From sequence record KJ019146.1: a DNA stretch of 64,000 nt; one strand, given 5' to 3'. Of the stretch, positions 10,477-60,897 are shown in pieces. The first letter of the stretch is position 1; each line of letters starts with the position of its first letter. A program made the translations under genes and the position numbers. Below the pieces are notes generated by a model. It saw nothing but the letters and a program-made list of their open reading frames with translations. It was not told the DNA's origin and made no database searches.

Positions 10477-10514
10477 AAACACATAAATAAGAAATGTAAC
10501 GTTCTTATTACAAC

Positions 10515-10600
10515 ACTTCCATCTAACCGAGACCTATGGGGAAGTAAAATACGTCTCTAATACCTACACCGGAGGGTGGTGTAGGAATAATACTATCGTC
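10515..10600 (+). ncRNA. Structured psbA 5' leader, probably the PhotoRC-II motif
   Basis: GAGAC/GTCTC pairing and CCTACACC/GGTGTAGG hairpin; position upstream of a cyanophage psbA matches the known motif. Confidence 0.6.
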
Positions 10601-58946: not shown

Positions 58947-59564
58947 TTGGAAAACATTATGACAGAAGCGACAGAAACCAAGAAACCGCGTAGCGCACGA
59001 AAGGCACGCAAACCAGCGGCACCCAAAGTCCCTACCTCCCTACCAAACAATCCTTTGATGTTTGAGATTCTTGACATGGCATCCCGTACTAGGGGTACTG
59101 AAAAGAAGGTAGATGTTCTCAAGAGATACGGGTGTGGTGCTCTAAAGGCACTATTCATCTGGAACTTTGATGAAACTGTAGAGTCTGCTCTACCACCAGG
59201 TGAGGTTCCCTACTCTGGATATGAAGAACAGCATGTATACAGTGGAACACTAACTGATAAGATTGAAGAGTCTTCACGTCAGATGTATGAGAATGGAAGT
59301 TTCTCATTGGGTTCTACTGATGCCAACGCTAAGACTACACTAAGGGCACAATGGAAGAACCTCTATCACTTTGTTGAGGGTGGTAATGGTGGTCTATCTA
59401 AAACACGTCGTGAGATGATGTTTATCAACCTCCTAGAATCTGTTCATCCTCTGGAAGCAGAGATCCTCATCCTAGTCAAGGATAAGGAACTTGACACCAA
59501 GTATAAGGTTCCCTTTGAGGTTGTAGAAGAAGCATTCCCCGAGATCCAATGGGGAGGACGTTGA
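58947..59564 (+). CDS. Conserved T4-like cyanophage hypothetical protein
   Basis: LPPGEVPY, RREMMFINLLE and HPLEAEIL motifs; start may be ATG 58959. Confidence 0.75.
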   Translation: MENIMTEATETKKPRSARKARKPAAPKVPTSLPNNPLMFEILDMASRTRGTEKKVDVLKRYGCGALKALFIWNFDETVESALPPGEVPYSGYEEQHVYSGTLTDKIEESSRQMYENGSFSLGSTDANAKTTLRAQWKNLYHFVEGGNGGLSKTRREMMFINLLESVHPLEAEILILVKDKELDTKYKVPFEVVEEAFPEIQWGGR

Positions 59565-59590
59565 CATAAATACAAAGGATATGTTATAAT
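59561..59590 (+). promoter_or_regulatory. Consensus sigma70 promoter
   Basis: TTGACA-18 nt-TATAAT with a TGn extension, directly upstream of the riboswitch-like element. Confidence 0.8.
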
Positions 59591-59597
59591 ATCCACA

Positions 59598-59685
59598 CGT
59601 TCAACCCACTTCGGTGGGTCGCAAGTAAGTCGCGGAACGGATTCGTTCATCCAGGAAACTGGACGCAAACGACTGAAGGAACGGG
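59598..59685 (+). ncRNA. Glutamine riboswitch-like element (glnA / Downstream-peptide family), doubled
   Basis: Two CGTTCA-hairpin-CGCAA units, two GGAACGG, AGTA/GAA E-loop-like strands, AGTCG/CGACT helix. Confidence 0.8.
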
Positions 59686-59717
59686 TTTTAACTAACCTCA
59701 ACTTCAGGAGTACTACT

Positions 59718-59885
59718 ATGAACACTCTCGCACTCATCAAAAAGCAGATCAACAAAGCTGCCGCACTTCACAACGCTCAGATTTCTCACACCGCCTATCG
59801 TGGTGTTGAGTATGATGTTAGTTGTGATCAGTCTTCCGAGACACATGGCACTTTCTGCTACCGCGGACGCACTTATAACAAGTGA
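59718..59885 (+). CDS. DUF4278-like small protein (55 aa)
   Basis: AGGAG RBS; TAYRGVEY and CYRGRTY motifs; not in the ORF track. Confidence 0.8.
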   Translation: MNTLALIKKQINKAAALHNAQISHTAYRGVEYDVSCDQSSETHGTFCYRGRTYNK

Positions 59886-59906
59886 GTCCTAACTGAATAG
59901 TGTAGG

Positions 59907-59937
59907 AAAGGGAAGGACTTGTTTCTTCCCTTTTTTT
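59907..59937 (+). terminator. Intrinsic terminator
   Basis: AAAGGGAAG/CTTCCCTTT stem plus T run. Confidence 0.8.
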
Positions 59938-59968
59938 GTGCTATAATATAAACAAGTATTCTATCATC

Positions 59969-60148
59969 ATGGACACAGACAAAGTAAAGTTTCTCATTCA
60001 ATCCATAGAGGTTCTCATTGATGAACTAAAATCAGAAGTATATGCTGAGGGTGAAACTTTTAAAGTAAGTGAAACCCAGTACTCAGAGGAATCAGAAATT
60101 CCAACGACTATAACAAACTTTTATCCTGAAGTGACGGACGATCTATGA
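59969..60148 (+). CDS. Small conserved hypothetical protein (MDTDKVKFLIQSIEVLIDELKSEVY)
   Basis: Follows TGCTATAAT; ATGA overlap with thyX. Confidence 0.65.
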   Translation: MDTDKVKFLIQSIEVLIDELKSEVYAEGETFKVSETQYSEESEIPTTITNFYPEVTDDL

Positions 60149-60897
60149 AACCAGTCAAGGCAGATACACTCCTCAAACTAGATCCTCACCAGAAGGTTGA
60201 GATGATCCGTTGTACTCCCAACCCACAGCAACTTGTGTTTATGGGTGGTAAGAATGACTATAGTGAACTACCCATTGAAGACACAGACATTCCTCAAGAG
60301 AAAGAGTGTGGAGCGTGGGTTATTGAGCAACTCTTAGCGAACGAGAGAGGACACTGGGGACCCCTAGAACACCCCTCTATCACCTTCTCCTGTAGTGGGT
60401 TCGTTCATAACGTTATGGTTCAGGCAAGAACCCATAGAGTGGGTATTAGTTTCGATGTTCAGTCACAACGATATACTTGCAAGAGAGTTCTAAAAGTTGC
60501 AGAAGGGAAACTATCACCCCAGTCAGTATTCTATGTGAGACCTCCTGGTTTCTATACAAATAGAAAGGGAAAGAAGTATGAGTGGTCAGAAGATGACTAC
60601 CAGACACAACTGGGACTAACACTAGCGGCATCTAGACGATACGCAGTTCAGTTTGAGAATGGTGTATCTGAAGAACACGCTCGTGATTATCTACCACAGA
60701 ATATTCGTCAGAACTTTGTAGTCACCTTTAGTCTTCGTTCTCTCCTACACTTCCTAGATCTTCGAGCTAAACTAGATGCTCAGTTGGAAATCCAAGCTCT
60801 ATGTGAGGCTATGATTGAGCCCACTAAGACCTGGGTTCCTGAAATCTTTGAATACTACTCAGAGAAACGACTACACAGGGCAAGACTTGCCCCCTAA
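60145..60897 (+). CDS. thyX: Flavin-dependent thymidylate synthase
   Basis: GHWGPLEH, QARTHR...SFDVQSQRY, EHARDYLP and FLDLR..LDAQLEI motifs. Confidence 0.93.
   Translation: MKPVKADTLLKLDPHQKVEMIRCTPNPQQLVFMGGKNDYSELPIEDTDIPQEKECGAWVIEQLLANERGHWGPLEHPSITFSCSGFVHNVMVQARTHRVGISFDVQSQRYTCKRVLKVAEGKLSPQSVFYVRPPGFYTNRKGKKYEWSEDDYQTQLGLTLAASRRYAVQFENGVSEEHARDYLPQNIRQNFVVTFSLRSLLHFLDLRAKLDAQLEIQALCEAMIEPTKTWVPEIFEYYSEKRLHRARLAP

Follow-up and report, generated by a model that had tools for sequence, protein, structure and literature searches.

Some riboswitches join two homologous ligand-binding modules to a single expression platform, among them the tandem glycine riboswitch and the pseudo-two-fold-symmetric cyclic di-AMP (ydaO) riboswitch. 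Glutamine riboswitches come in two types, glutamine-I (glnA) and glutamine-II, and the structure of the former was reportedly described by Ren et al. in 2015. Here, these systems are compared with a leader RNA at positions 59596-59687 of a 64,000-nucleotide (nt) stretch of sequence record KJ019146.1, hereafter the window, from Synechococcus phage ACG-2014f, a cyanomyovirus. The leader precedes an open reading frame (ORF) for a protein of 55 amino acids (aa). It is probably a glutamine riboswitch of two interlocked aptamer modules, which would switch translation on by releasing the Shine-Dalgarno (SD) sequence and start codon; the probability of this reading is put at roughly three in four.

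In glutamine-I, helix P3 projects to one side and the pocket nucleotides lie in P1/PK (pseudoknot). A long-range pair, the linchpin, terminates the ligand-binding helix: it is C19:G41 in glutamine-II and has a counterpart in glutamine-I (Huang et al. 2019, PMC6698751). Both types are ON switches upstream of genes for DUF4278 or IF17-like proteins; marine Synechococcus and Prochlorococcus carry glutamine-II aptamers only, and no genome combines the two types (Klahn et al. 2018, PMC6212724). Tandem glutamine riboswitches number 157 doublets and 4 triplets and are regarded as "pseudo-cooperative", with independently functioning copies side by side; overlapping matches were discarded as single riboswitches (Sherlock 2022, PMC9481103). 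Tandem copies also appear in Weinberg 2010 (PMC2864571). A 2017 survey recorded only two glutamine aptamers in cyanophage genomes and judged phages to be rare users of riboswitches (PMC5473149). Isolated Rfam matches in cyanophages have been published, and the 99-nt glnA match in S-CREM1 has the length of the compact double form described below.

The phage element shares with glutamine-I its P1 (CGUUC/GAACG), P2, E-loop strands (CGNAAGUA and GAAG), P3, linchpin and location in the 5' untranslated region (UTR) of a DUF4278-type gene. It departs from glutamine-I in that P3 is not a hairpin but the entry to a circularly permuted second junction. The window also has CGC in the J2/3 joining strand and a G after P1, the linchpin polarity of glutamine-II; relatives include a CGG...C version. 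With glutamine-II the element shares the pocket nucleotides CGUUCA, CGCA and GGAACGG, but it lacks both the P2 helix around GGAACG and the H-type pseudoknot. In the marine Synechococcus and Prochlorococcus hosts, glutamine-II is likewise an ON switch and lies 5' of short ORFs for DUF4278 proteins (PMC6212724). Because the phage topology is that of glutamine-I, with the linchpin in either polarity, whereas the hosts are reported to have type II only, the element does not look like a simple recent copy of a host leader.

As in tandem glutamine riboswitches, each leader contains two aptamer copies, but those of the phage are nested and strand-swapped, with a common P3 and one platform. The glycine and ydaO riboswitches offer a parallel in internal duplication, with the resulting pseudo-symmetry and a possibly steeper two-ligand response; their ligands and folds are different. 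Where the glycine aptamers lie side by side and make tertiary contacts, the phage module sits within a helix of the other and takes its P1 from swapped strands. Already known are both glutamine riboswitch types, with their association with DUF4278, their tandem arrangements and isolated occurrences in cyanophages. An aptamer nested as a circular permutation in the P3 of another, with swapped P1 strands and two covarying linchpins, appears to be undescribed. Full-text searches of the literature gave no account of nesting or permutation in a glutamine aptamer, nor of ORFs in aptamer loops; Ames & Breaker 2011 and Ren et al. 2015 may mention such features.

The leader matches the glutamine-I aptamer family

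A first-pass annotation of the window had proposed a glnA-type three-way junction with E-loop strands, and all of its motifs lie where it placed them. Helices are named as in solved structures (P1, CGUUC/GAACG; P2, a hairpin; P3, AGUCG/CGACU), with primes for the copies in the insert, and the parts of the element given here are on the + strand. The outer P1 5' strand CGUUC and the conserved A occupy 59598-59603, are invariant in 29/29 compact relatives, and pair through CGUUC with GAACG at 59679-83. The conserved A is followed by the P2 hairpin ACCCAC-UUCG-GUGGGU (59604-59619), each of whose four closing pairs is doubly changed in relatives. P3, the third helix of the junction, is formed by AGUCG (59628-59632) and CGACU (59670-59674).

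Between these helices lie the joining strands. The window motif CGCAAGTA at 59620-27 is J2/3, which in the RNA reads CGCAAGUA (59620-59627). Together with the J3/1 strand GAAG (59675-78), it corresponds to the glutamine-I E-loop strands CGGAAGUA and GAAG. The one G-to-C difference between CGCAAGUA and CGGAAGUA falls on the linchpin nucleotide, which covaries with its partner. Here, C59622 and G59684 form the long-range Watson-Crick linchpin, and the segment from J3/1 through the P1 3' strand to the linchpin G spans 59675-59684. The order of promoter, aptamer, SD and ORF places the element in the 5' UTR of a DUF4278-type gene.

An Rfam scan points the same way. Model RF01739 (Glutamine; glutamine-I, glnA) matches 59596-59687 at 41.1 bits, over the gathering threshold of 35, with model positions 1-53 complete, an E value of 1.6e-5 over the whole 64-kb window and a 41-nt insert in the P3 loop. 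The Downstream-peptide model (Glutamine-II, RF01704) matches the 3' half (59641-59691) at 32.1 bits, below its cut-off of 33, and relatives score 26-27 bits, also under it. Membership in glutamine-II was rejected: all matches are sub-cut-off, there is no P2 helix, and most P2 alignment positions are flagged as non-pairs. In every respect testable in silico, the sequence of the element places it in the glutamine-I family.

A second, circularly permuted junction shares P3

Instead of a loop, P3 encloses a second junction, as the first-pass annotation had proposed. Its core (59633-59649) consists of a CG joiner, P1' GAACG (59635-39), the loop GAUU (59640-43), P1' CGUUC (59644-48) and A59649. It is followed by the P2' hairpin UCCAG-GAAA-CUGGA (59650-59663) and the inner J2/3 strand CGCAAA (59664-59669). 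G59640, in the P1' loop, is the inner linchpin partner and pairs with C59666. The minimum free energy (MFE) fold of 59596-59687 is this nested fold (-30.5 kcal/mol, z = -2.35). The annotation had also raised an alternative tandem register, in which CGUUC1/GAACG1 and CGUUC2/GAACG2 pair; in the window sequence the constrained folds are nearly isoenergetic, at -30.2 kcal/mol for nested and -29.5 kcal/mol for tandem.

Relatives were collected from two sources. A BLAST search of deposited phages with leader and ORF returned 419 records, at least 343 covering at least 80% of the query, and all are cyanophages. Four pattern scans of viral contigs, in which the inner GGAACG/CGUUCA and the J2/3 motif were fixed, gave at least several hundred loci; 277 distinct elements were parsed among the matches listed. 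Loci are given below as L numbers. The recurrence of the pattern with covariation in several hundred viral contigs is, judged by sequence, beyond chance. A pattern scan of 185,579 cellular genomes (596 Gb) yielded 35 matches against ~38 estimated by chance and no clear cellular copy. Complete elements in that scan lie only on six marine contigs from single-amplified genomes (SAGs) or metagenome-assembled genomes (MAGs) (L124, L126, L130, L148, L155, L156), two of them 189-194 kb long and thus as large as a cyanomyovirus genome. Their bins are Prochlorococcus or Synechococcus SAGs/MAGs and also Dehalococcoidia, Poseidoniales and Euryarchaeota MAGs; the six contigs probably represent cyanophage DNA that was either mis-binned or derived from infected cells.

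Covariation among these relatives supports the nested helices. When 29 compact forms are aligned, the nested structure reaches 96.1% pairing, 11 pairs are doubly changed and the covariation score is 0.239, against 0.076 in shuffled alignments (0/500) and at most 0.069 in slid controls. P3, the AGTCG/CGACT pairing for which covariation had been proposed as a check, changes in a compensatory manner at pairs 1, 5 and 8. In the 5-base-pair (bp) class, the fifth pair changes from G-C to A-U (AGUCA/UGACU variants), and G.U variants occur too. In the 8-bp class (n = 174), pair 8 is U-A in 102, A-U in 11, G-C in 59 and U.G in 2, leaving 174/174 paired; pair 1 is A-U in 145, G-C in 23, C-G in 3 and G.U in 1, with 2 mismatches. 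Local mini-hairpins of the form AG-NNNN-CU, considered for the 8-nt class instead of a trans P3, are closable in 101/174 elements versus 172-174/174 for the trans pairing and were rejected. P1' also shows a compensatory flip from G-C to C-G, with CAACG/CGUUG in L187 and L202 while the outer CGUUC and GAACG are unaltered.

The linchpins discriminate between the two registers. The outer one, between the third J2/3 nucleotide and the nucleotide after GAACG(2), is C:G in 176 and G:C in 101 of the 277 elements, with no mismatch. The inner one, between the first loop nucleotide after GAACG(1) and the third nucleotide of the inner CGN, is paired in 262/277 (G:C 217, C:G 40, A:U 3, U:A 1, U.G 1, mismatch 15). 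The two vary independently, the four combinations numbering 128, 89, 37 and 3. In the 126/277 mixed elements, both linchpins are Watson-Crick in the nested register only, whereas the tandem register would give G.G and C.C. Together, P3, P1' and the two linchpins show the conserved fold to be nested. The tandem register was rejected as the conserved fold, since it breaks the linchpin pairs of these 126/277 elements and the P1 of L187 and L202. This pattern of sequence change identifies the insert as another glutamine-aptamer-like junction in circular permutation, with P3 common to both.

In the 8-bp class, both P3 strands frequently read AGCCGACU. The duplex is therefore quasi-palindromic and the whole RNA pseudo-two-fold symmetric, which would fit an origin by tandem duplication followed by strand swapping.

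Other forms occur among the relatives. Single canonical glutamine-I aptamers, with P3 as a plain hairpin, are present in viral contigs L190, L195, L225 and L228 and have the same CGCAAGUA joiner and a similar SD region. A variant at L196:4900-5020 (- strand of the locus) has CGUUCA twice, no GAACG(1), and a P3-like GGUCUGGG opposite CCCGCCC; it may be a degenerate or intermediate form. A 22-nt hairpin, UUCGCUAUUCGCAAAUAGCGAA or close variants of it, recurs in otherwise differing elements, as P2' in L025, L063, L075, L076, L109, L110 and L116 and as P2 in L007, L072, L103 and L123, and may be a swappable or protein-bound module.

The inner junction as a candidate ligand site

The inner junction keeps all nucleotides that Huang et al. 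assigned to the ligand surroundings: the closing C:G of P1, the base-triple G of CGN, GGAACG and the linchpin. The sequence of P1' is conserved, whereas P2, P2' and P3 drift, a contrast that is partly pattern-imposed. With two junctions, a linchpin in each and one expression platform, the architecture would fit the logic of a glycine-type cooperative dual aptamer. Glutamine binding at the inner site, making it a second ligand site, is a matter of about even odds.

A putative expression platform that may sequester the SD

The putative expression platform (59673-59707) overlaps the 3' side of the aptamer. CUGAAG (59673-78), which in the nested fold belongs to P3 and J3/1, can alternatively pair with CUUCAG (59702-07), which overlaps the SD AGGAG (59706-59710) by 2 nt; the AUG lies 7 nt further 3'. 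The MFE fold of 59596-59725 includes this CUGAAG:CUUCAG helix (-45.2 kcal/mol, z = -4.7). Among relatives, the core variant CUAAAG faces CUUUAG or CUUUGG in 30/30 cases; with a CUGAAG core the opposite nucleotide is C in 34 and U in 32, and the A.C combination is never seen. The helix is 90.5% paired, with two doubly changed pairs and a covariation score of 0.276, against 0.190 for shuffled alignments (0/500).

When the aptamer fold is forced, the SD becomes more accessible in 108/122 elements, its mean unpaired probability rising from 0.42 to 0.53, while that of the AUG rises from 0.42 to 0.63. A second contact concerns the start codon itself. GUUCA of the 5' P1 strand (within 59597-59603) is complementary to UGAAC (59719-59723) at AUGAAC and is paired with it in the full-leader MFE. 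In this ORF2 type, ORF2 being the downstream ORF, the second codon is AAC in most copies looked at and AAU in L001. For ORF2 of this kind, the modelled OFF state may therefore hide both initiation signals, SD and AUG. The covarying CUGAAG:CUUCAG helix, the opening of SD and AUG, and the precedent of ON switches in cyanobacteria together favour ON polarity, and a translational ON switch for the 55-aa ORF is a reasonably probable reading of the platform.

Most relatives carry ORFs inside the aptamer loops

The window represents the ORF-free form, with a GAAA tetraloop in P2'. In relatives, the P3 insert ranges from the 41 nt of the window to ~240 nt. Among the first 130 parsed elements, 31 are compact as in the window, 66 have the P2' loop replaced by a complete ORF of 49-66 codons (phrog_504), 11 have an ORF in the P2 loop (phrog_6471) and 22 have both, so that P2-loop ORFs total 33. 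Syn9 gp196 and gp197, upstream of gp198, exemplify the form with both loops occupied. The embedded ORFs at L001:401-660, L002:405-668 and L003:193-675 correspond to window positions 59650-59663 and 59604-59619.

The embedded ORFs appear to be truly coding. ORF1 is intact in 81/87 elements and ORF0 in 31/33; the ORF1 protein sequences include 80 distinct ones; and differences fall mainly at third codon positions, synonymous exceeding non-synonymous. Both protein groups (phrog_504 and phrog_6471) have a hydrophobic N-terminus and two Cys.

The ORFs are interwoven with the RNA structure. The long-range stems that close them covary and hold the AUG within the 5' strand, and the stops fall in the 3' strand of the stem or in the aptamer core, the ORF1 stop being the UGA or UAA inside CGACU(G/A)AAGG. 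In the 5-bp-P3 class, the P1' loop is GAG in 53/55 ORF1-bearing elements versus 0/13 compact ones; with the preceding G it reads GGAG, a putative SD that includes the inner linchpin G. A possible consequence is that the aptamer fold would bury the initiation signals of the embedded ORFs and free the downstream one.

Proposed mechanism

In the proposed mechanism, the leader would form the 5' part of an ~340-nt monocistronic early transcript of ACG-2014f. The outer module would be a canonical glutamine-I three-way junction whose P3 opens into a second junction instead of a loop. Because the inner junction circularly permutes the same aptamer, the repeats would be strand-swapped in cis, with P3 in common. 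The linchpins C59622:G59684 and C59666:G59640 would each close the glutamine pocket of one junction. Without ligand, CUGAAG would pair with CUUCAG beside the SD, and GUUCA could pair with UGAAC at the start codon. Glutamine would stabilise the nested fold, freeing SD and AUG, and the 55-aa DUF4278-like protein would be translated.

An extension of this mechanism, held more tentatively, is a domain-swapped two-site glutamine sensor with reciprocal gating of the embedded ORFs and the downstream DUF4278 ORF. Both junctions would bind glutamine and be coupled through the common P3, giving a cooperative, sharper response. At high glutamine the embedded ORFs would be off and the downstream DUF4278 ORF on, and one fold would gate two or three proteins. 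Translation of an embedded ORF would in turn melt the sensor.

The element would be a compact natural example of riboswitch duplication into a pseudo-symmetric two-module sensor, and it makes testable whether a second site sharpens glutamine sensing of millimolar affinity. Against the two aptamers of the 2017 survey stand at least 343 deposited phage records that have the element with its ORF, and several hundred viral contigs that have the element; interruption of the aptamer by ORFs is the probable reason why most phage copies were overlooked earlier. The phage appears to monitor host glutamine, a signal of the nitrogen status of the cell, with an early transcript of a type-I topology reportedly unused by marine hosts. 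The small nitrogen-regulator-like protein of 55 aa is probably turned on at high host glutamine.

Alternative interpretations

Several observations weigh against a two-module ON switch. The inner joining strands are CGCAAA and C, compared with CGCAAGUA and GAA outside, and so are 2 nt shorter on each side. Invariance of the inner GGAACG/CGUUCA and of J2/3 was partly built in by the search patterns; in a looser scan of viral contigs the inner motifs were still mostly exact. Swapping P3 partners within length classes does not discriminate (0.828 vs 0.833), the P3 signal consisting of three variable positions; the control is uninformative because just those three positions vary. The modelled opening of the SD (0.42 to 0.53) is modest. 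Nearest-neighbour energies in the window prefer the platform-paired state by ~12 kcal/mol, so the aptamer fold depends on kinetic control or on energy from tertiary contacts and ligand. The opposite polarity could be argued from a weak CCUC/GGAG hairpin. Finally, the window protein scores 21.7 bits (E = 2.7e-4) with Pfam DUF4278, under the cut-off of 25.3.

With its shortened joining strands, the inner junction has no E-loop and may not bind the ligand. There could then be one functional glutamine-I aptamer, the outer, and the inner junction would be a ligand-free P3 extension, a scaffold or folding aid left from duplication. This view carries appreciable weight but falls short of even odds. 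The sideways projection of P3 in glutamine-I would tolerate such extensions; a single aptamer with J2/3 and platform unchanged is seen in L190, L195, L225 and L228; and the L196 variant lacks GAACG(1). An inert extension sits less well with an inner linchpin that covaries like those of real aptamers (G:C, C:G, A:U) over six P3 classes, with a P1' sequence that is conserved while P2, P2' and P3 vary freely, and with a complete set of the pocket nucleotides named by Huang 2019. Two side-by-side aptamers, either independent or toggling with the nested register as a switching step, are a quite improbable arrangement. The closeness of the two energies in the window (-29.5 vs -30.2 kcal/mol), the tandem-register position of the glutamine-II matches (window, 32.1 bits; relatives, 26-27 bits) and the frequency of tandem glutamine riboswitches elsewhere (PMC9481103, PMC2864571) would suit it. 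Its linchpins, though, would be G.G and C.C in 126/277 elements and its P1 would contain C.C and G.G in L187 and L202. P3 covariation moreover ties the halves together, and an 8-bp P3 with a 2-nt joiner would be sterically unable to reach a tandem P1. Independent tandem aptamers would each have their own P1, linchpin and platform, but here a single platform pairs with the SD, and the glutamine-II matches are all sub-cut-off. The register that the annotation raised might thus be adopted transiently in the window sequence, without being the fold that selection has kept.

The same sensor could in principle work with opposite polarity, glutamine freeing CCUC to pair with GGAG and so repressing translation. 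A short CC(U)C...GGAG complement does recur 5' of the SD, and GGG after P1 holds CC in the ligand-free MFE. That hairpin, however, is just 3-4 bp, the helix that covaries is CUGAAG:CUUCAG, constraining the ensemble to the aptamer fold opens SD and AUG further in 108/122 elements, and both characterised cyanobacterial glutamine riboswitches are ON switches; an OFF switch is accordingly unlikely. A chance resemblance or decaying relic with no regulatory role is extremely improbable, given an Rfam score over the cut-off, compensatory changes in hundreds of distinct homologues and a fixed place between promoter and SD. Among ACG-2014f isolates, in addition, promoter, aptamer and platform are invariant except for a single C-to-U substitution, which turns a P2 pair into G.U, while the middle of the ORF is variable. 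The preferred reading is a glutamine-responsive leader with two interlocked modules, in which glutamine would be bound at least by the outer one, with sensing of host nitrogen status as its presumed role and cooperativity as a conceivable property.

The downstream protein and the transcription unit

The 55-aa ORF (59718-59885) contains two YRG motifs and matches phrog_545 (E = 1.4e-35). The annotation had called it DUF4278-like; 9/10 sampled same-position proteins of relatives match DUF4278 (E at most 1.4e-3) and 4/10 reach the cut-off, with up to 51 bits, while the window protein stays below threshold. The double YRG motif is present in 119/119 distinct ORF2 proteins. In the ORF2 of L072:4961-5089 and L116:497-625, YRG precedes the helix (LxLLKxQIEKAxRL...), opposite to their order in the window protein; the altered order suggests modular shuffling within the family, as judged from these sequences. 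The 55-aa protein might act on glutamine synthetase (GS). According to Klahn et al. (2018, PMC6212724), the C-terminal residues on which GS interaction depends in Synechocystis are absent even from the short IF17-like proteins of the hosts.

A sigma-70-type promoter at 59561-59590 directly precedes the aptamer, as had been proposed. It has a -35 TTGACA (59561-66), an 18-nt spacer with TG at 59582-83 and a -10 TATAAT (59585-90), matching consensus at 12/12 positions, and it is the only perfect promoter match of the region, with the TG extension. Its position predicts a transcription start near A59597, a single nucleotide ahead of the aptamer. Of 122 distinct upstream regions from related elements, 91 have a promoter-like site that ends 7-9 nt 5' of CGUUCA.

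At the other end of the unit, an intrinsic terminator (59904-59937) has a 14-bp stem (59904-17/59923-36) followed by a U run (-19.8 kcal/mol, z = -3.5). In isolate Syn7803C17 (L318), an A-U pair of the stem is replaced by G-C, a compensatory change. A rule-based scan for a stem plus T-run called no terminator, probably because such simple rules are unsuited to this hairpin, which folding shows to be strong. With promoter, SD, 55-aa ORF and strong terminator in succession, the unit is predicted to be a short monocistronic transcript. It is flanked by a DUF6433 gene on one side and by a small ORF and then thyX on the other. Directly after the terminator, a second -10-like sequence, GCTATAAT (~59938-59945), may drive the small ORF (59969-60148) and thyX (60145-60897). 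Elsewhere in the window, a second cis-regulatory RNA already known from cyanophages, Rfam PhotoRC-II (RF01717), lies at 10503-10598 (+) with 69.5 bits against a cut-off of 39.

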